Source of the DNA: Anaeramoeba ignava BMAN
Taxonomy: Eukaryota > Protista > Anaeramoebae
DNA: 64,000 nt
Reading direction: 5' to 3'
Assembly: GCA_028826165.1 (NCBI GenBank)
Contig: JAPDFW010000117.1
Location: forward strand, 62,001-126,000
The notes under the pieces were generated by a model. That model was not told the DNA's origin. It saw only the letters and a list, made by a program, of their open reading frames with translations, and ran no database searches. Below, piece by piece: positions 16,558-48,431 of the stretch. Every line of letters starts with the position of its first letter. Within the stretch, counting starts at the first letter, position 1. Made by a program: the position numbers and the translations under genes.

Positions 16558-19500
16558 ATGTCATTATTTGATCTTATTCTTTCAAATTCTTTAAAAAAAA
16601 TTAAAGAAAAAATTAATTCAAATAATATTAACGAAAAAGATGTTAAAAATTATTAATTCTTTTCTTATATTTTAAATTAATAATAATTATTATTTTTTAA
16701 AAATAAAAAGTCTGTAAAAATTAATAAGAAAAATAAAAAGAATGAAAATTATATTGAAAATTAATTATTTAAAAAATTTTTTAAATTAAAAGATTGTAAG
16801 AAGTTTTCTATTATCATTTCAATCAAATTTTATATTCAAATTTTTTTATAAATTAATAAATTAGCAAAATTCTCTTTTACATTATTCAACTTTTGAAAAT
16901 ATTTCTGTTGAAATAATTGATTATCTTTTATCTTTAGGCGCAGATATAAATGCAATAAATGTTTTCATTTTATTTTATTATTCTTTTTTCTTTTCAAAAT
17001 TGCAATTAAAAATAGAATTTAATTTAGAAAGTAAAAATTAAAATTAAAAATTAAAAATTAAAAATTAAAAATTAAAATTAAAATTTAAAAAAAAAAGCTT
17101 GTAAATTTTTATTACATTTCCTTTTGCATTCATTCACTCATATTTAAATAATAATCTAAAAGGAAGAAACTCCAATTTGTACTGCTTGTAGAAAAGGGAA
17201 TGTAGATGCAATTAATTTTTTACTTTCAAAATCTCCTCAAGTCTCAATAACAAATGTTAATCTCCTTTCTTTTAAATTTATTACTTTATATCATTTTATC
17301 TCATTAAAATTTTATTATTTTATTAGAAAGTAAATATTTCTCTTTCTTTCCTTTGATTTATTATTTTATTTTATTTTATTTTATTTTAGATGGTAAAGTT
17401 CTTTTTTTCAAATAAACAAAATTCTTTTGAATTATTTTTTTAACAACAAAATATTTGTTAATATTTTTCTAAATAGAAAGTATCTCCATTACATTATGCT
17501 TGTAGAAATGATTTAGGTTTTGAAATAATTGAAAAATTAATGAAAGCTGGTGGAAAAATTAATGAACCAGATGTAAATATAAAATTAATTTTAATTTTTA
17601 TTTTATTTCTATTATTAAATAAAACAAAATTAAAGGATGTAAATTTATATTTCTTCTCAAAAAAAAAAATTTATTCTTGAATTTAATTTAAAAAGGAAGT
17701 AATTTTTCAAATCCAAATTGAAATTGGAATATTTTTTTTTAAAAAAATTTCTAATAATTTCTAATAATTTAGGGAATTTATCCTTATGAATATTCAATTA
17801 GGAAAGGAAATTATGAAGTTGTGAAATATTGTGTTGATAATTTTCCAATAATTTTTGAACAAGTATTATTTATTATAATTCCAAAAAAAAAAAAAAAAGC
17901 AATCAAACAATTTTTCATTCTTTTCTTTTATATTATTCATTTTATAGATGAAAAATAAATTTAATCAATATCAATTTACAACAACAGAACCGAAAATTAC
18001 AAAATTATTACTTAATAGGGTTGATAATATTTCTGTTAGTAAAAAATTTAATTTTAATCTTAATCTCATAAAACAAATATTTACATACATAAACAGAATA
18101 AATTTCTTCATTTTTTAGTGAAAACAAATCAAGCTGATGAAGAAATAATTGATTTTTTCCTTTCTAGAGGATATGATATAAATTCAAAAGATGTATTTAT
18201 TATTGTTATTTAAAACCTTTTTTTTTTCTAAAATTAACTCTATTAGGAAGTAATTTAATTTATTATTTAATCAAGAAAATTAAATTAATAAAAATTCTAT
18301 TTAGTCAGTAAATTCTACTTTAATTTTTTTATTTTTATTTTTATTTCTATTTCTATTTTTTAGGGAAATAGTCTTTTACATTATACTTTTACTCAAAATG
18401 CAAGTATTTTGAAATATTTATTATCAAAAGGAGCAGAAATAAATATTTTAGATGTTAGATTTCCTTTTTTCATTAAATATTATTCAAAATTTAAATCTTG
18501 TCTTCTTCTTCTTCTTCTTCTTCTTCTTCTTCTTCTTCTTCTTCTTCTTCTTCTTCTTCTTCTTCTTCTTCTTCTTCTTCTTCTTCTTCTTCTTCTTCTT
18601 CTTCTTCTTCTTCTTCTTCTTCTTCTTCTTCTTCTTCTTCTTCTTCTTCTTCTTCTTCTTCTTCTTCTTCTTCTTCTTCTTCTTCTTCTTTTTTTTTTAT
18701 TTAATAGTCTGTTAGTTTTAAAAAGAAATTGAAATTGTTTTAAAATGAAAAAAAGTTTTGCGAAATTAAAATGATTTTGAAAAATAAAAGGAAGTAAAAG
18801 AAAATATAAATATAATTATAATAAAAATCAAAAAGTTGATCATGATAGTTTTTATATAAATTTAATAGAATAAAACACCTTTTTGGAAAAGTTGGTATTA
18901 TGGATTTGAAGAAGTTAGATATTTTTATCTTGAAAATGGAGCTGATCCAAATTTTTATCCAGTATAAAGATATTTAGAATTTAAATTTTAATTTAATTTT
19001 AATTTTAATTTTAATTTTTTATATTTTATCAATTTAGTCAGTAATTCTTTTTTTAGTTTTGATCAAAAAATAAAAAATTCAAATTTAAATTTTTAAAACA
19101 ATCTTTTTTTTTCTTTTAATAATTTTTTTATAGAGGTTCAATTTAGGATATTGGCCTTTAGAAAACAGACATGAAATTTTAAAGAAATTTATTGAATACG
19201 GAATGTCTTTGGAAAGAATTGTTTGATTTTATATTAATATAATAATAATAATAATATTTTTATTTAGTTTGTGATTTATCTTTCTTTATTTTAAAAAAAA
19301 AAACAAGAAACAATTTTCTTATGATGGAATAAAACCAGAAGAGCTTAAATTTTTATCCAAATATGAAAATGAATATAATTATTTTTTAGATGATTTTAAT
19401 CAATTATTTATTCGAGGAGAGTTTACAGATTTGACTTTTCATTGTTTGGATGGAGATATTGAAGTTCATAAATTAATTTTACTTCTTCGTTTAACTGAGA

Positions 19501-20957
19501 AAATTCAAATTCAAAATGAAAATGAAAATGAAAATGAAAATGAAAATAAAAATGAAAATCAAAATAAAAATCAAAATCAAAATGAAATTAAAAATCAAAA
19601 TCAAAATCAAAATCAAAATAAAAATCAAAATCAAAATCAAAATCAAAATCAAAATAAAAATGAAAATCAAAATGAAAATGAAAATGAAAATCAAAATCAA
19701 AATCAAAATCAAAATAAAAATGAAAATCAAAATGAAAATGAAATTAAAAATCAAAATCAAAATCAAAATCAAAATCAAAATCAAAATCAAAATAAAAATC
19801 AAAATCAAAATCAAAATCAAAATCAAAATCAAAATCAAAATCAAAATCAAAATAAAAATCAAAATCAAAATCAAAATGAAAATCAAAATCAAAATGAAAA
19901 TCAAAATCAAAATCAAAATCAAAATCAAAATGAAAATCAAAATCAAATTGAAAATGAATTTAAAAATCAAAATCAAAATCAAAATCAAAATCAAAATCAA
20001 AATCAAAATCAAAATCAAAATCAAAATCAAAATCAAAATCAAAATCAAAATCAAAATCAAAATCAAAATCAAAATGAAAATGAAAATGAAAATGAAAATC
20101 AAAATCAAAATAAAAATCAAAATCAAAATCAAAATAAAAATGAAAATGAAAATGAAAATGAAAATCAAAATCAAAATCAAAATCAAAATGAAAATCAAAA
20201 TCAAAATCAAAATAAAAATCAAAATCAAAATCAAAATCAAAATCAAAATGAAAATGAAAATCAAAATCAAAATCAAAATCAAAATAAAAATCAAAATCAA
20301 AATGAAAATGAAAATGAAAATGAAAATGAATTTGAAAAACAAATGGAAAAAGCTGAAATTATTTTACAAAATCTTCAAAATTATGCAAAAACCAAAAATA
20401 AGAAAAAAATTTTAATATTTATTCAATTTCTTTATTCAACAAAAATTGATAATAATGAATATGAAAAAAATATAAATAAAATTCGAAAAATAAGTGAAGA
20501 AATTGGACTTTCAAGACAATGGTATCATGAAAAAAAAGGAAAACAAGGATTACTTAAAGATATGAAAAAATTATTTGAAAATGATTTATCAAAAGATTTT
20601 ATAATTATTGTTCAAGAAAAAGAAATTCATGTTCATAAATTAATTCTTGTTGCAAGAAGTGATTTATATAGAGGAATGTTTTTAAGTGTTAAAGATGATT
20701 CTAATAAAGTTCATGATTATAGTTCAAAATCTTTTAATTCAATTCTTTCTTTAATAAAATTTTTATATTTAGATCAAATTGATAATGATTTGGATGAGGA
20801 AATTAAAAAAGAACTTTGTGATTGTGTTGATTATTTTCAATTAAATGAATTTTCAAAAGAAAAATTTATATTTAAAACAAAAAGGAATTGGAAACAAAGA
20901 TTAAAAGCAAAATTTTCAAGAAAAAAGAAAAAATCAAAAAAAATGGAATGGAATTAA
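16558..20957 (+). CDS. Ankyrin-repeat + tandem BTB protein, ~24-25 exons. Major exons 16558-16641, 16865-16960, 17163-17255, 17477-17572, 17773-17862, 17948-18034, 18097-18192, 18364-18453, 18869-18961, 19134-19220, 19308-20957, plus 13-14 three-nt microexons
   Basis: Each internal major exon is 87-96 nt, phase 0, and encodes one ankyrin(-like) repeat (QNSLLHY..LLSLGADINAIN; EETPICTAC..; KVSPLHYAC..AGGKINEPD; GNSLLHY..LLSKGAEINILD; NKTPFW..ENGADPN). The last exon has BTB motifs (FTDLTF..IEVHKLILLLR; KDFIIIV..IHVHKLILVARSDLYRGMF) and is in frame with ORF 19431-20957. Confidence 0.88.
16711..16795 (+). other. Microexon pair 1: TCT (16711-16713, Ser) and ATT (16793-16795, Ile)
   Basis: aaaag|TCT|gtaaaa and aaaag|ATT|gtaaga; introns of 69, 79 and 69 nt; yields EKD-S-I-QNSLLH. 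Confidence 0.85.
17028..17100 (+). other. Microexon pair 2: AAA (17028-17030, Lys) and CTT (17098-17100, Leu)
   Basis: tttag|AAA|gtaaaa and aaaag|CTT|gtaaat; introns of 67, 67 and 62 nt; yields AIN-K-L-EETPIC. Confidence 0.85.
17327..17392 (+). other. Microexon pair 3: AAA (17327-17329, Lys) and ATG (17390-17392, Met)
   Basis: attag|AAA|gtaaat and tttag|ATG|gtaaag; introns of 71, 60 and 84 nt; yields ITN-K-M-KVSPLH. Confidence 0.85.
17636..17698 (+). other. Microexon pair 4: GAT (17636-17638, Asp) and GAA (17696-17698, Glu)
   Basis: taaag|GAT|gtaaat and aaaag|GAA|gtaatt; introns of 63, 57 and 74 nt; yields EPD-D-E-GIYPYE. Confidence 0.85.
18247..18307 (+). other. Microexon pair 5: GAA (18247-18249, Glu) and TCA (18305-18307, Ser)
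   Basis: attag|GAA|gtaatt and tttag|TCA|gtaaat; introns of 54, 55 and 56 nt; yields SKD-E-S-GNSLLH. Confidence 0.87.
18501..18690. repeat. (CTT)n microsatellite, ~63 units, intronic
   Basis: Perfect ctt array inside intron 18454-18707. Confidence 0.95.
18708..18793 (+). other. Microexon pair 6: TCT (18708-18710, Ser) and GAA (18791-18793, Glu)
   Basis: aatag|TCT|gttagt and aaaag|GAA|gtaaaa; introns of 254, 80 and 75 nt; yields ILD-S-E-NKTPFW. Confidence 0.83.
19038..19040 (+). other. Single microexon TCA (Ser)
   Basis: tttag|TCA|gtaatt; flanking introns of 76 and 93 nt. Confidence 0.75.
19268..19270 (+). other. Possible single microexon TTT (Phe)
   Basis: tttag|TTT|gtgatt; flanking introns would be only 47 and 37 nt, so a single 87-nt intron is equally plausible. 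Confidence 0.4.
19510..20330 (+). repeat. Coding (AAAATC/AAAATG)n hexamer array giving a ~270-aa NQ/NE tract inside the first BTB-like domain
   Basis: In-frame in ORF 19431-20957; no flanking GT/AG pair suggesting an intron. Confidence 0.85.
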
Positions 20958-36599: not shown

Positions 36600-39042
36600 T
36601 TAATAATTTTGATAATTTTGTTGTTGATAGTTTTGTTGTTGATAATTTTGTTGCTGATAATTTTGTTGTTGATAATTTTGTTGTTGATAATTTTGTTGTT
36701 GAAAGTTTTGTTGTTGAAAGTTTTGATTATTGTTTTGTTGTTGAAAGTTTTGTTGTTGATTGTTTTGTTGTTGAAAGTTTTGTTGTTGAAAGTTTTGATT
36801 GTTTTGTTGGTTATTTTGATGATGATGATGATGATGACGTTTTGAATTGCTTTTTTGAGAATTTGAATTAGATGAATTAGGTTGATTTTTTGATTGTTTT
36901 TGAAGAAAAAATTGAGTCGTTATGTTTTTTTGAGATGATTGAACCGGGTTTTTTGGGATATTTTTTTGATTTTTATGCTGATAATTTTGATTTGATTTTG
37001 AATTTGTACCTTGAATATCCAAATAAATATTCATAAAAAAAGTAAGTCTTTGATCTGGTTTCCAATTTTTAAAAAAATCAAAATATTGATATTGTGAATA
37101 AAATTGAAGATATAATTGATCTAAACTTAATCCTGAATTTTGTTGGAAAAATTGTTTCAATTCATTGGAAATAAAACTTCTGAATTCAAATTTTTTATCA
37201 AAAATAATAGTGAATCCAAATGATCCTTCAAATTTCATTAATTCTTTTGAAAGTTCTTCTTCAATAGTAATCCATGGTTTAAAAACTGGATTGATTTGTT
37301 CATTTGAAACAAATTTCCCAAAAAGAGTAAACATATCATTTGCATTTGAATATCCAATTGATTTTCTTAATAAATAACTTTTTTCATCAGGATAACAATT
37401 TGGATTAATACTTGTAATTAAAGTAAGTGTCATCGATGCAACTGATTTAGTATCTCCTCCAAAACTTAATACTTTCTTAAGTGCATCTTCATATTTTTTA
37501 TCATGATATTTAAGTGCTAACATAATTGATAATAAAATTGAACATAATGAAAATCCATCAGATGATTTATCAACTATTTGGGTTGTATAAAGTTCTGCAT
37601 AGTTTTTAATAAAAGTATTGATATTCTCATCAAATAAACTTTCTTTTTTGTTCTTTTCAAAAAAATTATTAACTTTGATCGCTTTGAAAAAAGAAGAAAC
37701 AGCAAGAAAATAATAGTTTTCTTCTAAATATGGTTTTTGATCCAATTGAATTAAAACATCTTCAAAATTTTTCACTCTTTGATAAACAAAATCGAGAGCT
37801 TCATTTATATTGATTTGAGAATCAGTTTTTTTTTCATCCAAAGGTGAACCAATAAAATATAAAAGCAAAACAGCATAAGCATATGCAGTTGTAAATGCAA
37901 AAAAATGAGTGTGAGTTAAATTTGTTATTTGAAATAAATCGTTTCGAAGACTTTGGATTGCTTCATCAATATTCGTTGTGTTTCTCCAAGCAGCAATAGC
38001 AACTGGTGCTATTCTTTTTGATGCTCCATTTCCTGCTGATTTTGATGGTGTTTTGTTTCTTATTGCTGTTCTGAACATGTTTCCAGTTCCTCGAAATAAT
38101 CCAAATTGATATTTTTTAGGAGAATATCCATTAACTATCCAAAATAAATTTTCAGATGCTTCAGTCCATTTATCAAATAAGTTTCGTGAATCTAGTTTTT
38201 GATTCCTTTTATTTTTAATAAAATAATTTTAAATAAATATGAATTGAATATTGAATTAAATATTAAATATTGAATTGAATTGAATTGAATATTGAATTTA
38301 ATTGAATTGAATATTGAATTGAATATTGAATTGAATTGAATTGAATATTGAATATTAAATTGAATATTGAATTGAATTAAATATTGAATTGAATATTGAA
38401 TTGAATATTGAATATTAAATTAAATATTGAATTGAATATTGAGTTGAATTAAATTAAATAAATTAAATATTGAATATTGAATATTGAATTGAATATTAAA
38501 TATTAAATATGAATTGAATATTAAATTAAATTAAATTAAATTAAATTAAATTAAATTAAATAAATTGATTTGAATTTAATTGAATTGAATATTGAATATT
38601 GAATATTGAATATTGAATATTGAATATTGAATATTGAATTGAATATTGAATTAAATTGAATATTGAATTAAATATTAAATTGAATATTGAATTGAATTGA
38701 ATATTGAATTTAATTGAATATTGAATTAAATTAAAATAAATTCATTTGAATTTAATTAAATAAATTCGGAAAAATAATTTTAATAAATTAAATGAAAATA
38801 ATTTAAATTAAATATTAAATTGAATAATAAATTAAAATAAGATACAATAAGTAATGTTCACAAATTGAAAGTGTCATTTGTGTATCATCTGTATAAACAT
38901 AAACTTTTTCTTGTGAAATTTTTGATGATATATTTTCAATCGATTTATTTTCAAATAAAGCACCAACTGCATCTCCAACAAGTCCTGAAATTAAACATCT
39001 TCTTACTTTTTCAACCCAAAAAGATTTATTGTTTTTTTGCAT
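36600..39042 (-). CDS. ADP-ribosylglycohydrolase (ARH/DraG family) copy 1 with Q/N/Y tail; exons 39042-38846, 38205-36600
   Basis: RCLISGLVGDAVGA, YTDDTQMT, SAGNGASKRIAP, TNLTH; the second metal motif is altered to GGDTKS. Confidence 0.88.
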
Positions 39043-39941: not shown

Positions 39942-42900
39942 TTAATTTTGATTGTTTTTTTTATTATATTTATATGGATTGTTTTTATTATCGAATTGAT
40001 AATTTTGTTGTTGTTGATAATTTTGTTGTTGTTGTTGATTATTTTGATTGTTTTGAGGATAATTTGGTTGTTGTTGATAATTTTGATTTGATTGTAAATT
40101 TGTGTTTTGAATTTGGAAATAAGTATTCATAAAAAAATTAATTCTTTCTTCTGTTTTTAAAATTTTAAAAAAATCCAAATATTGATATTGTGAATAAAAT
40201 TGAATATATAATTTATCTATACTTAATCCTGAATTTTGTTGGAAAAATTGTGTTAATTCATTATCAAGAAATTGGAGGAAATTAAATTGATTATCAAAAA
40301 TAATAGTAAATCCAAGTGATCCTTCAAATTTCATTAATTCTTTTGAAAGTTCTTCTTCCATATCAATCCATGGTTTTAAAACTAAATCAGAAGGTTCATT
40401 TGCAACAAATTTCCCAAAAACAGTAAACATATCATTTGCATTTGAATATCCAATTGATTTTCTTAATAAACTACTTTTTTCATCAGGATAACAATTTGAA
40501 TTAATACTTGTAATTAAAGTGAGTGTCATTGTTGCAAGTGTATCTGTATCTCCTCCAAAACTTAATACTTTCTTAAGTGCATCTTCATATTTCTTATCAT
40601 GATATTTAAGTGCTAACATAATTGATAATAAAACTGAACATAATGAAAATCCATCAGATGGTTTATCAACTTTTTGGTTTGTATAAAGTTCTGCATTGTT
40701 TTTAATAAAATTCCCAACATTAAGATCAAATGAATTTTCTTTTTTGTTCTTTTCAAAAAAATTATCAACTATAATTAATTTGAAAAAAGAAGAAACAACT
40801 GAAAAATAACTTGGATCTTCTAATTCAGGTTGATTGGAAGATTTCATTAAATATTCTTCATATTCAAAAACTTTTTGATAAACAAATTTGAGAGTTTCAT
40901 TTATATTGACTTGAGAATCAGTTACTTTTTTCTTAAAAGGTGAACCAATAAAATATAAAAGCAAAACAGCATAAGCATATGCAGTTGTAAATGCAAAAAA
41001 ATTAGTGTGAGTTAAATTTGTTATTTGAAATAAATCATTTTGAAGACTTTGAATTGCTTTATCAATATTCTTTGTGTTTCTCCAAGCAGCAATAGCAACT
41101 GGTGCTATTATTTTTGATGCTCCATTTCCTGCTGATTTTGATGGTGTTTTGTTTCTTATTGCTGTTCTGAACATGTTTCCAGTTCCTCGAAATAATCCAA
41201 ATTGAAATCTTTTAGGAGAATATCCATTAACTATCCAAAATAAATTTTCAGATGCTTCAGTCCATTTATCAAATAAGTTTCGTGAATCTAGTTTTTGATT
41301 CCTTTTATTTTTAATAAAATAATTTTAAATAAATATGAATTGAATATTGAATTGAATATTGAATTGAATATTGAATATTGAATATTAAATATTGAATTAA
41401 ATATTGAATATTAAAAATATTGAATATTGAATATTGAATATTGAATTGAATTGAATATTGAATTGAATATTGAATTGAATATTGAATATTGAATATTGAA
41501 TATTGAATTGAATTGAATTGAATTGAATATTAAAATTGAATATTGAATATTGAATTGAATTAAATATTGAATATTGAATATTGAATATTGAATATTAAAT
41601 ATTGAATTTAAAATTTGAATATTGAATATTGAATATTGAATAAATGAATATTGAATATGAATATTGAATATTGAATATTGAATATTGAATATTGAATATT
41701 GAATATTGAAATGAATATTGAAATTGAATTGAATATTGAATTGAATATTGAATGAATTGAATATGGAATGAATATGAATGAAATTGAATATTGAATAATA
41801 TTGAATCGAATATTGGGTGAATATTGAATATTGAATTGAATCGAATTGAATATTAAATGAATAAAATTAAAATTGAAATCGAATTGAATATTGAAATGAA
41901 TATTGAATTGAATATTGAATATTGAATATTGAATTGAATATTGAATATTGAATATGAAATTGAATTAAATATTGAATTGAATATTGAATTGAATATTGAA
42001 TTGAAATTGAAATTGAATATTGAATTGAATATTGAATTAAATATTGAATTAAATTGAATATTGAATTGAAATATTGAATTGAATAAATTTGAATTTTGAA
42101 TTGAAATTGAAATAAATTCGGAAAAATAATTTTAATAAATTAAATGAAAATAATTTAAATTAAAATTAAATTGAATAATAAATTAAAAATGAAGATACAA
42201 TAACGAATAATGTTTGAAATTGAAAAAATTGAATATTTTGAATATCATCTGAATATAAACATAAACTTTTTCTTGTGAAATTTTTGATGATATATTATCA
42301 ATTGAATTTATTTTCAAATAAAGCACCAACTGAATATTGAACAAGTCCTGAAAATTAAACATCTTCTTACTTTTTCAATTAAAAAAGATTTATTGTTTTT
42401 GCATTTTTAATTTATTAAAAAGAAAAAGGAAAAATGAAAATAAATATTTTGTTTTTATTGAAAAAGAAAATCAAAAATGAAAAAGATTTCTTTTGATTTA
42501 ATTGAAATTGAATTGAATTGAATATTAAATTGAATATTGAAATTAAATAAAATTAAAATTGAAAATTGAATTTGAATTTTAAAATTGAATATTGAATATT
42601 GAATATTGAATTGAATTGAATTGAATTGAATTGAATTGAATTGAATTGAATATTGAATTGAATTAAATTGAATATTGAATTGAATTAAATTGAATTGAAT
42701 ATTGAATATTGAATATTGAATATCGAATATTGAATATTGAATATTGAATTGAATATTGAATATTGAATATTGAAATTTGAATTGAATTGAATATTGAATG
42801 AATTGAATTAAATTGAATATTGAATTGAATTAAATTGAATTGAATATTGAATATTAAATTGAATTGAATTAAATTAAATAAATTCATTTGAATTAAATTA

Positions 42901-43420: not shown

Positions 43421-45655
43421 TTAATTTTGATTGTTTTTTTTATTATATTTATATTGATTGTTTTGAGGATAATTTGATTGTTGTTGATTATATGGATTGT
43501 TTTTATTATCGAGTTGATAATTTTGCTGTTGTTGATAATTTTGTTGTTGTTGATTATATGGATTGTTTTTATTATCGAATTGATAATTTTGTTGTTGTTG
43601 ATAATTTTGATTGTTTTGAGGATAATTTTGTTGTTGTTGATAATTTTGATTTGATTGTAAATTTGTATTTTGAAATTGGAAATAAGTATTCAGAAAAAAA
43701 TTCATTCTTTCTTCTGATTTTAAAGTTTTAAAAAAATCCAAATATTGATATTGTGAATAAAATTGAATATATAATTGATCTATACTTAATCCTGAATTTT
43801 TTTGGAAAAATTGTGTTAATTCATTATCAATAAATTGGAGGAAATTAAATTGATTATCAAAAATAATAGTAAATCCAAGTGATCCTTTATAGTTAATTAA
43901 TTCTTTTGAAAGTTCTTCTTCCATATCAATCCATGGTTTTAAAACTAAATCAGAAGGTTCATTTGCAACAAATTTCCCAAAAACAGTAAACATTTCATTT
44001 GCATTTGAATATCCAATTGATTTTTTTAATAAATAACTTTTTTCATCAGGATAACAATTTGAATTAATACTTGTAATTAAAGTGAGTGTCATTGTTGCAA
44101 GTGTATCTGTATCTCCTCCAAAACTTAATACTTTCTTAAGTGCTTCTTCATATTTTTTATTATGATATTTAAGTGCTAACATAATTGATAATAAAACTGA
44201 ACATAATGAAAATCCATCAGATGGTTTATCAACTTTTTTGGTTGTATAAAGTTCTGCATAGTTTTTAATAAAATTCCCAACATTAAGATCAAATAAACTT
44301 TCTTTTTTGTTCTTTTCAAAAAAATTATCAACTATAATTAATTTGAAAAAAGAAGAAACAGCTGAAAAATAACTTTGATCTTCTAATTCAGGTTGATTGG
44401 GAGATTTCATTAAATATTCATATTCTAAAACTCTTTCATAAACAAATTTGAGAGCTTCATTTATATTGATTTGAGAATCAGTTACTTTTTTCTTAAAAGG
44501 TGAACCAATAAAATATAAAAGCAAAACAGCATAAGCATATGCAGTTGTAAATGCAAAAAAATGAGTGTGAGTTAAATTTGTTATTTGAAATAAATCATTT
44601 TGAAGACTTTGAATTGCTTTATCAATATTCTTTGTGTTTCTCCAAGCAGCAATAGCAACTGGTGCTATTCTCATTGATGCTCCATTTCCTGCTGATTTTG
44701 ATGGTTTTTTGTTTCTTATTGCTGTTCTGAACATGTTTCCAGTTCCTCGAAATAATCCAAATTGAAATTTTTTAGGAGAATATCCATTAACTATCCAAAA
44801 TAAATTTTCAGATGCTTCAGTCCATTTATCAAATAATTTTGGTGAATCTAAATTTTTATTCCTTTTATTTTTATTAAAATAATTTTAAATAAATATGAAT
44901 TGAATTAAATATTGAATATTAAATATTAAATATTGAATATTGAATTAAATATTGAATTAAATATTGAATTAAATATTGAATATTGAATATTGAATTGATT
45001 TAAATATTGAATTGAATTGAATTGAATATTGAATTGAATTGAATATTGAATATTAAATATTGAATATTGAATTGAATATTGAATATTGAATATTAAATAT
45101 TGAATTGAATATTGAATATTAAATATTGAATATTGAATTGAATATTGAATATTGAATATTGAATTGAATATTGAATATTGAATATTGAATATTGAATTGA
45201 ATATTGAATTGAATTGAATATTGAATTGAATTGAATATTGAATTGAATTGAATATTGAATATTAAATTATTGAATTGAATATTGAATTGAATATTGAATT
45301 GAATATTGAATTGAATTAAATTAAATAAATTCATTTGAATTGAATTAAATAAATTAATTTGAATTTAATTAAATAAATTCGGAAAAATAATTTTAATAAA
45401 TTAAATGAAAATAATTTATATTAAATATTGAATTGAATAATAAATTAAAATAAGATACAATAAGTAATGTTCACAAATTGAAAGTGTCATTTGTGTATCA
45501 TCTGTATAAACATAAACTTTTTCTTGTGAAATTTTTGATGATATATTATCAATTGATTTATTTTCAAATAAAGCACCAACTGCATCTCCAACAAGTCCTG
45601 AAATTAAACATCTTCTTACTTTTTCAACCCAAAAAGATTTATTATTTTTTTGCAT
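43421..45655 (-). CDS. ADP-ribosylglycohydrolase copy 3; exons 45655-45459, 44861-43421
   Basis: All canonical motifs intact: YTDDTQMT, GNGASMRIAP, GGDTDT. Confidence 0.9.
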
Positions 45656-45919: not shown

Positions 45920-48431
45920 TTAATTTTGATTGTTTTTTTTATTATATTTATATGGATTGTTTTGAGGATAATTTTGTTGTTGATAATATTGATTGTTTTT
46001 ATCATCGAATTGATAATTTTGTTGTTGAAAGTTTTGATTGTTTTGAGGATAATTTTGTTGTTGTTGATTATATTGATAATTTTGTTGTTGATAATATTGA
46101 TTGTTTTTATTATCGAATTGATAATTTTGTTGTTGTTGATTATATTGATAATTTTGTTGTTGTTGATTATATTGATAATTTTGTTGTTGTTGATAATTTT
46201 GTTGTTGTTGATAATTTTGATTTGATTGTAAATTTGTATTTTGAAATTGGAAATAAGTATTCAGAAAAAAATTCATTCTTTCTTCTTTTTTTAAAGTTTT
46301 AAAAAAATCCAAATATTGATATTGTGAATAAAATTGAATATATAATTGATCTATACTTAATCCTGAATTTTTTTGGAAAAATTGTGTTAATTCATTATCA
46401 AGAAATTGGAGGAAATTAAATTGACGATCAAAAATAATAGTAAATCCAAGTGATCCTTTATAGTTAATTAATTTTTTTGAAAGTTCTTCTTCCATATCAA
46501 TCCATGGTTTTAAAACTAAATCAGAAGGTTCATTTGCAACAAATTTTCCAAAAACAGTAAACATATCATTTGCATTTGAATATCCAATTGATTTTCTTAA
46601 TAAACTACTTTTTTCATCAGGATAACAATTTGAATTAATACTTGTAATTAAAGTGAGTGTCATTGTTGCAAGTGTATCTGTATCTCCTCCAAAACTTAAT
46701 ACTTTCTTAAGTGCTTCTTCATATTTTTTATTATGATATTTAAGTGCTAACATAATTGATAATAAAACTGAACATAATGAAAATCCATCAGATGGTTTAT
46801 CAACTTTTTTGGTTGTATAAAGTTCTGCATAGTTTTTAATAAAATTCCCAACATTAAAATCAAATAATTTTTCTTTTTTGTTCTTTTCAAAAAAATTATC
46901 AACTATAAATGCTTTGAAAAAAGAAGAAACAGCTGAAAAATAACTTTGATCTTCTAATTCAGGTATATTGGAAGATTTCATTAAACATTCTTCATATTCC
47001 AAAACTCTTTGATAAACAAATTTGAGAGTTTCATTTATATTGATTTGAGAATCAGTTTTTTTTTCATCCAAAGGTGAACCAATAAAATATAAAAGCAAAA
47101 CAGCATAAGCATATGCAGTTGTAAATGCAAAAAAATTAGTGTGAGTTAAATTTGTTATTTGAAATAAATCATTTCGAAGACTTTGGATTGCTTTATTAAT
47201 CTTCTTTGTGTTTCTCCAAGCAGCAATAGCAACTGGTGCTATTCTCATTGATGCTCCATTTCCTGCTGATTTTGATGGTGTTTTGTTTCTTATTGCTGTT
47301 CTGAACATGTTTCCAGTTCCTCGAAATAATCCAAATTGAAATCTTTTAGGAGAATATCCATTAACTATCCAAAATAAATTTTCAGATGCTTCAGTCCATT
47401 TATCAAATAATTTTGGTAAATCTAAATTTTTATTCCTTTTATTTTTAATAAAATAATTTTAAATAAATATGAATTGAATATTGAATTTAAATATTGAATA
47501 TTGAATTGAATATTGAATATTGAATTGAATATTGAATTGAATATTGAATATTGAATATTAAATATTGAATTGAATATTGAATATTGAATATTAAATGAAT
47601 TGAATATTGAATATTGAATATTGAATTGAATATTGAATTGAATATTGAATATTGAATATTGAATTGAATATTTAATATTGAATTGAATATTGAATTGAAT
47701 ATTGAATTGAATATTAAATAAATATGAATTGAATATTGAATTGAATTGAATATTGAATTAAATATTGAATTGAATTGAATATTGAATATTGAATTGAATA
47801 TTGAATATTGAATATTGAATATTGAATATTGAATATTGAATTGAATATTGAATATTAAATATTGAATTGAATATTGAATTAAATATTGAATTGAATTGAA
47901 TATTAAATTAAATTAAATATTGAATATTGAATTGAATATTAAATATTGAATTGAATTGAATATTAAATATTGAATTGAATTGAATATTGAATATTGAATT
48001 GAATATTGAATTGAATATTGAATATTGAATATTAAATTAAATTAAATAAATTAAATATTGAATATTGAATTGAATTGAATTGAATTGAATTGAATTGAAT
48101 ATTTAATTGAATATTGAATTAAATTAAAATAAATTATTTAATTTAATTAAATAAATTCGGAAAAATAATTTTAATAAATTAAATGAAAATAATTTATATT
48201 AAATATTAAATTGAATAATAAATTAAAATAAGATACAATAAGTAATGTTCACAAATTGAAAGTGTCATTTGTGTATCATCTGTATAAACATAAACTTTTT
48301 CTTGTGAAATTTTTGATGATATATTATCAATTGATTTATTTTCAAATAAAGCACCAACTGCATCTCCAACAAGTCCTGAAATTAAACATCTTCTTACTTT
48401 TTCAACCCAAAAAGATTTATTATTTTTGCAT
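45920..48431 (-). CDS. ADP-ribosylglycohydrolase copy 4; exons 48431-48237, 47435-45920; 2-nt homopolymer deletion just after the ATG (error or pseudogene)
   Basis: Motifs are intact, but exon 1 is 195 nt versus 197 in the other copies (ATG CAA AAA TAA). Confidence 0.75.

Follow-up and report, generated by a model that had tools for sequence, protein, structure and literature searches.

Tandem single-codon exons at the hairpins of ankyrin repeats in an ankyrin-BTB gene family of Anaeramoeba ignava

The ankyrin-BTB-BTB gene and its 3-nt exons

The window, by which we mean the whole 64,000-nt stretch of A. ignava DNA analysed here, carries at 16558-20957 (+) a gene of 24 exons and 23 GT..AG introns, whose exons, joined and checked for frame, give an open frame of 860 amino acids. 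Its ankyrin repeats are followed by BTB domains, which is the layout of an ankyrin-BTB adaptor. Between the large exons, 13 units of the form AG-NNN-GT (six pairs and one single) were accepted as exons of three nucleotides, all of them frame-neutral and phase 0. The features of the gene are as follows.

16558-16641 (+): exon 1, with ATG start and N-terminal cap, ending at the hairpin Asp (phase 0)
16711-16713 (+): 3-nt exon TCT (Ser), hairpin position 2
16793-16795 (+): 3-nt exon ATT (Ile), hairpin position 3
16865-16960 (+): ankyrin-repeat exon, 96 nt (Pfam Ank, 21.6 bits, over cut-off)
17028-17030 (+): 3-nt exon AAA (Lys)
17098-17100 (+): 3-nt exon CTT (Leu)
17163-17255 (+): ankyrin-repeat exon, 93 nt (Pfam Ank, E=0.0015)
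17327-17329 (+): 3-nt exon AAA (Lys)
17390-17392 (+): 3-nt exon ATG (Met)
17477-17572 (+): ankyrin-repeat exon, 96 nt (Pfam Ank, E=0.0005)
17636-17638 (+): 3-nt exon GAT (Asp)
17696-17698 (+): 3-nt exon GAA (Glu)
17773-17862 (+): degenerate ankyrin-repeat exon, 90 nt, no unit after it (Ank_3, E=0.03)
17948-18038 (+): 91-nt exon without Pfam match; the next intron is in phase 1 and has no units
18119-18192 (+): partial ankyrin-like exon, 74 nt, ending at the hairpin Asp
18247-18249 (+): 3-nt exon GAA (Glu)
18305-18307 (+): 3-nt exon TCA (Ser)
18364-18453 (+): ankyrin-repeat exon, 90 nt (Pfam Ank, 23.3 bits, over cut-off)
18454-18707 (+): 254-nt intron lengthened by a TCT microsatellite
18708-18710 (+): 3-nt exon TCT (Ser)
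18791-18793 (+): 3-nt exon GAA (Glu)
18869-18961 (+): divergent ankyrin-like exon, 93 nt, starting N-K-T-P-F (no Pfam match alone)
19038-19040 (+): single 3-nt exon TCA (Ser)
19134-19220 (+): divergent repeat-like exon, 87 nt
19221-19307 (+): 87-nt intron containing a rejected TTT unit (19268)
19308-20957 (+): last exon, with two BTB stretches (PF00651, 53.6 bits) and an Asn/Gln-rich run (~19503-20328), ending in TAA

Pfam and database searches were run with single exons of the gene, one at a time; of the large exons, five matched ankyrin models, in two cases above the cut-off, and the BTB domains expected from the original prediction are real, as the two stretches of the last exon indicate. 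The best relatives of the last exon are nearly all A. ignava proteins, and no database protein corresponding to the gene was found with this exon or with exon 17948-18037, the latter giving one unrelated match. An in-frame run rich in Asn, Gln and Glu, of about 275 codons (19503-20328, +), follows the beginning of the first BTB stretch, which it seems to interrupt, and no splice signals were noticed there. Elsewhere in the window there are four tandem paralogous ORFs (36600-38078, 39942-41174, 43421-44734 and ~45920-47308), and the one that was tested matches ADP-ribosylglycohydrolase (PF03747, 55 bits).

The introns of the gene measure 54-93 nt, except for the one of 254 nt, and have a G+C content of 9.4%; the sizes of those flanking the units agree with the mode published for A. 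ignava (76 nt at 8.1% G+C; PMC11550330 supplement), and most introns between units hold no GT or AG beyond their own. The long intron (18454-18707), the only one in the gene, ends at a TCT unit, the same triplet as in its microsatellite. If the units were ignored, each spacer would be read as a single intron, of 171-223 nt or, in one case, 415 nt. It had been claimed that AG-NNN-GT units cut these spacers into normal-sized introns, and this was confirmed: all 14 proposed units are present with their codons at their positions (14/14), and when the seven spacers were shuffled 20,000 times, no trial contained more than 4 AG-NNN-GT, as against the 13 observed. The fourteenth, a TTT at 19268 that had been called doubtful, was rejected, since as an exon it would have flanking introns as short as 47 and 37 nt and would depend on a GTG donor, and its surroundings (19221-19307) form a normal 87-nt intron. 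Three further AG-NNN-GT, at 17477, 17547 and 18892, were discarded because they lie at the start of, or within, large exons.

With the pairs included the repeats are 34, 33, 34, 32, 32 and 33 residues long, which agrees with the predicted restoration of 32-34-residue repeats; without them the lengths are 32, 31, 32, 30, 30 and 31. The residues that the units encode occupy positions 2 and 3 in the beta-turn of the ankyrin repeat, as had been proposed. To speak of units at each repeat was, on the other hand, an overstatement, because no unit lies in the junctions 17863-17947 and 18039-18118 (phase 1), and just one lies in 18962-19133.

Recurrence in the genome and inclusion in a transcript-derived paralogue

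The A. ignava genome (42.8 Mb in 147 contigs, the window being C118:62001-126000) was scanned for the same arrangement, with results in the form of pattern counts. Two 3-nt units followed by an x-x-T-P-L exon were found 264 times, against 10 for the reversed pattern, and 264 is a lower bound, given that the pattern finds just one of the six pairs of the window gene. Among the matches listed, 99 true pairs fall in about 47 places, which by rough extrapolation corresponds to about 120 loci. At least one unit before an x-x-T-P-L exon was counted 335 times (control, 45), and direct junctions of Asp/Asn, intron and x-x-T-P-L are at background (36 against 32 in the control), with no excess of unit-free repeats. 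Single 6-nt exons at the hairpin are rare (16 genome-wide). Generic 3-nt pairs, irrespective of what follows, number 965 against 489 in the reversed control, and 4-nt pairs number 85, mostly from one Arg/Ser-rich coding repeat. The genome scan that had been suggested for unit pairs thus bears out the enrichment before ankyrin exons, but unit chains also occur in non-ankyrin genes. No match to the hairpin pattern was found in JGI metagenome contigs.

The units behave as codons. Among the first units of pairs there is one TAA against 46 TAT (P ~1e-14), although the two triplets are about equally frequent in the unit-flanking introns, and a hand tally of 195 units among the matches listed contains no stop codon. 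The earlier argument from sense codons is therefore strong genome-wide, where the stop TAA is avoided, but carries little weight within the window gene, where an absence of stops is expected by chance with P=0.34. Asn and Lys are frequent among first units, Asp and aromatic residues among second units, and both follow the preferences of positions 2 and 3 in outside ankyrins (permutation P=0.006), the corresponding test against intronless A. ignava repeats being not significant (P=0.10). The donors of the units are also distinctive, with GTAA at 12 of 13 units and at two of ten large exons (P=0.0007). These counts show that the layout is family-wide and that the units are under selection as codons.

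The length of the linker from G-A-D-V-N to T-P-L-H provides a further measure. It comprises seven residues in 315 of 389 outside repeats and in 161 of 176 intronless A. ignava repeats, and five residues, the length left when both units are omitted, in 1/389 and 0/176, respectively. Among the repeats that could be scored in NCBI models, the 5-residue linker was present in 24 of 46 from A. ignava and in none of 15 from A. flamelloides. Gene prediction does miss the units, as had been anticipated, and many of the A. ignava ankyrin proteins in public databases probably have incorrect binding hairpins, given that these 24 repeats are two residues short.

Inclusion of the units is supported by a paralogue. 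The EukProt protein EP01156_Anaeramoeba_ignava_P014559 (P0356, 616 aa) clusters with the NCBI model KAJ5069543.1 (P0244, 614 aa) and is identical to it except for an additional K-S at the last hairpin (Y-R-D/K/S/L-K-R-P). Its name is built like that of an ORF predicted from an assembled transcript, so that P0356 appears to be transcript-derived. The gene lies at C93:194894-196976, and at its last hairpin the upstream exon ends at 196027, AAA stands at 196095-196097, AGT at 196160-196162, and the next exon begins at 196269, with introns of 67, 62 and 106 nt in between; two genomic pattern searches for these units gave one match each, both at this locus. Since K-S is present in the transcript-derived protein and encoded by two genomic 3-nt exons, both units are spliced in, in order, and the NCBI model misses them; this support concerns one hairpin of one paralogue and an assembled consensus, which is blind to minor isoforms. 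The same gene is intronless over its first 378 codons and has a unit pair solely at its last hairpin, and thus intronless and microexon layouts coexist in one gene. For another paralogue (P0014) no transcript copy was found among proteins of 171-544 aa.

Public models join the large exons directly, and one could accordingly suppose that the units are not exons but chance motifs, recursive-splicing ratchet points or remnants in longer introns of 170-220 nt, the protein lacking its hairpin tips. We consider this highly improbable. Chance is made implausible by the shuffles and by the 264 pairs against 10 in the control, and a recursive-splicing element should be absent from the mRNA, whereas both units are present in the transcript-derived paralogue. 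The depletion of TAA, the abundance of pairs at 3 nt but not at 4 nt, and the near absence from natural ankyrins of the 5-residue linker that a protein without units would have also argue against it.

It is instead likely that the units are real, mostly constitutive 3-nt exons that grew from an older hairpin intron. The main mRNA of the window gene would normally include both units in order, giving an ordinary repeat of 32-34 residues, and each short, A+T-rich flanking intron would be recognised singly and removed in turn. Being short and nearly free of G, these introns each offer a clear donor and acceptor, as ordinary intron-by-intron splicing would need, and if introns are recognised one by one, exon size sets no limit on splicing. 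The strong GTAA donors of the units would favour inclusion; strong splice sites are a mark of constitutive microexons in human brain (PMC8831610). Forms in which the units are skipped would probably fold poorly, given the rarity of the 5-residue linker in natural ankyrins. BTB domains usually recruit Cullin-3, and the protein may be a substrate adaptor whose ankyrin surface binds the substrate and whose BTB domains probably recruit Cullin-3. Even on this cautious reading, single-codon exons stand in tandem at hundreds of repeats, which should surprise splicing specialists, and A. ignava offers a natural test set for how the spliceosome handles consecutive 3-nt exons.

Origin of the units

In A. 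flamelloides ankyrin-BTB genes, a phase-0 intron lies directly after the hairpin Asn at five hairpins, in the place of the first of the A. ignava introns, and the next two residues are in the downstream exon. No unit pairs were found in the four intron-containing loci among the five A. flamelloides genes sampled. In one gene of this species (P0256), the two ankyrin introns lie inside the G-A-D/N-V-N motif, away from the hairpin Asp/Asn, which indicates that there is more than one intron position in this family. The phase-0 intron after the hairpin Asp/Asn may predate the split from A. flamelloides, and in the lineage of A. ignava an intron and its codon could have been duplicated in tandem as one unit, placing introns between the next codons, the module subsequently spreading with repeat and gene duplication.

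Such duplication is suggested by two non-ankyrin A. ignava genes that carry unit chains, the introns in each chain being almost copies of one another (mean pair scores of 88 and 69, against 29 in the window gene), indicating that tandem duplication of an intron with its three adjacent bases is active in this genome. One of them (C1:409316-413127, minus strand) has 34 3-nt units separated by near-identical introns of 67-91 nt, after a BTB-like and coiled-coil region. Its units are all sense codons and are rich in Tyr, Arg, Asn, Asp, Gln and Pro. The other (about C1:942.3-942.8 kb, minus strand), which may be TLDc-like, has seven phase-1 3-nt units after a G-P-T-F-G motif; Pfam gave no confirmation of this identity on the pieces of the gene. 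With all units included it would read R-D-Y-L-D-Y-Y-Y, and larger arrays similar to this chain are seen at C1:1058078-1073174. Tandem intron-plus-codon duplication would be the simplest source of the ankyrin units as well, but their own introns give no support for it, being no longer alike: in the window gene intron likeness is 29.5 within one hairpin against 28.8 between hairpins. Of the three introns A. flamelloides has the first alone, and the A. ignava chains are young, so that the gain of introns with codons in tandem is directly testable.

Mixed states exist as well. A second ankyrin gene (C1:697130-702210, minus strand) has hairpins with 3+3 nt, hairpins with single 6-nt exons and hairpins with no unit. 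A probable 9-nt exon was noticed further down in this gene.

Relation to known systems and diversification

Exons of three nucleotides are already known. Isolated microexons of 1-15 nt include the 3-nt exons of mouse Ncam and Drosophila troponin T, and in plants the 9-nt exons of AP2 and invertase genes encode motif residues and are widely misannotated (PMC8042270, PMC8831610). The A. ignava units are the same molecular object, being preceded by AG, followed by GT, flanked by normal introns on both sides and frame-preserving, but the animal and plant cases are mostly single, at one site per gene, whereas here tandem 3-nt pairs stand at almost every hairpin and in at least 264 repeats. The micro-exon genes (MEGs) of the flatworms Schistosoma, Echinococcus and Hymenolepis contain many tiny exons of a multiple of three nucleotides, some of one codon (PMC7653826, which cites DeMarco 2010). 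According to the same paper, they are missed by gene finding, as are the A. ignava units, and also by read alignment; they have runs of at least four micro-exons and vary by exon skipping. By the exon counts used there (at least seven exons, at least half of them shorter than 70 nt and divisible by three), the window gene resembles a MEG, with 13 of its 24 exons in this class, but no micro-exon run in it exceeds two, and its units sit pairwise at fixed sites of a folded repeat domain within a BTB adaptor. Those A. ignava genes that carry unit chains are closer to MEGs in appearance.

In the ROCO LRR and NB-ARC-TPR genes of brown algae, which encode a large family of presumed recognition proteins, each exon likewise carries one repeat (PMC3341825, PMC11378527), and the window gene has one repeat per same-phase exon (87-96 nt, phase 0, one phase-1 intron excepted). 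In brown algae it is the whole repeat that is shuffled or skipped, with diversifying selection shown (PMC3341825, PMC11378527), whereas in A. ignava two single residues per repeat have exons of their own. LRR-ROC-COR or NB-ARC-TPR domains are absent from the window gene, for which Pfam gives Ank and BTB alone. The gene therefore resembles both MEGs and brown-algal receptors in layout and belongs to neither class, as it lacks the micro-exon runs of the former and the domain sets of the latter. A literature search covering mainly open-access papers gave nothing relevant on microexons with ankyrin repeats or in Anaeramoeba, and the A. ignava genome paper with its supplements (PMC11550330) does not mention microexons. 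Within this coverage we found no paper describing single-codon exons that stand in tandem at set positions within a repeat family, and the tandem hairpin layout in an ankyrin family is apparently new.

The original prediction saw in the units individually spliced cassettes for binding-surface residues. That they are separate 3-nt exons stands; diversification by means of them is disfavoured by the strong unit donors, by the ordinary diversity of the encoded residues and by the presence of both units in the sole transcript-derived protein. The link to designed ankyrin proteins is also correct as far as it goes, since DARPin and ANK-N5C libraries randomise the beta-turn positions 2 and 3, between Asp1 and Gly4, which are unit-encoded in A. 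ignava (PMC4308713). These are engineered libraries rather than a gene structure, however, and they randomise positions 5, 10, 13 and 33 as well (PMC4308713), all of which lie in the large exon here, so that the units cover two of about six variable positions. Residue entropy at positions 2 and 3 is 3.4 and 3.8 bits for the units, 3.5 and 3.5 for outside ankyrins and 3.1 and 3.5 for intronless paralogues; the diversity of unit residues is therefore ordinary, at most slightly higher than that of ankyrin hairpins elsewhere.

Diversification by splicing would mean that units are skipped independently, one gene giving rise to many binding surfaces (2^13 forms), as in flatworm MEGs. All units are frame-neutral and at binding-turn positions (PMC4308713), about 69% of internal microexons in Drosophila are alternative (PMC8042270), and the chains of 34 units, in a BTB gene, and of seven, in one loop, seem to go beyond what a fixed loop needs. 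For the ankyrin pairs we nevertheless think it quite unlikely: apart from the donors and the transcript-derived protein, two units correspond to exactly two consensus positions, with position-specific residues, and the 5-residue linker of a skipped form, seen in 1/389 natural ankyrins, would probably fold poorly.

Alternatively, the units might be constitutive but serve as cassettes at the DNA level, their introns acting as sites of crossover or conversion and being selected for faster exchange of contact residues among repeats and paralogues. Such exchange is compatible with constitutive splicing, as an added function. It would fit the fixation of the layout at the same two positions family-wide, the mixed states within one gene (C1:697-702 kb), the recent duplication of intron-plus-unit modules in the chain genes and the parallel with exon shuffling of brown-algal LRR and TPR repeats (PMC3341825). 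Against it, introns within a hairpin are not homogenised and residue entropy in the units is at most slightly above that of other ankyrins, and we hold it to be unlikely. On our preferred reading, that of mostly constitutive exons, the layout would allow single hairpin residues to be acquired, dropped or exchanged one unit at a time.

More generally, single-codon exons at the binding loops of adaptor domains, ankyrin among them, might be skipped, chosen or exchanged to diversify these proteins residue by residue, perhaps against bacterial partners, prey or viruses, a doubtful proposal at present, with the ankyrin pairs as its fixed version and the long chains, whose introns are nearly identical, as its active one. 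If skipping or exchange proved true, this would be a new route of diversification for binding proteins in a single-celled eukaryote. The long chains are better candidates for it than the ankyrin pairs, and the MEG-like gene with 34 units is a good candidate for alternative choice.
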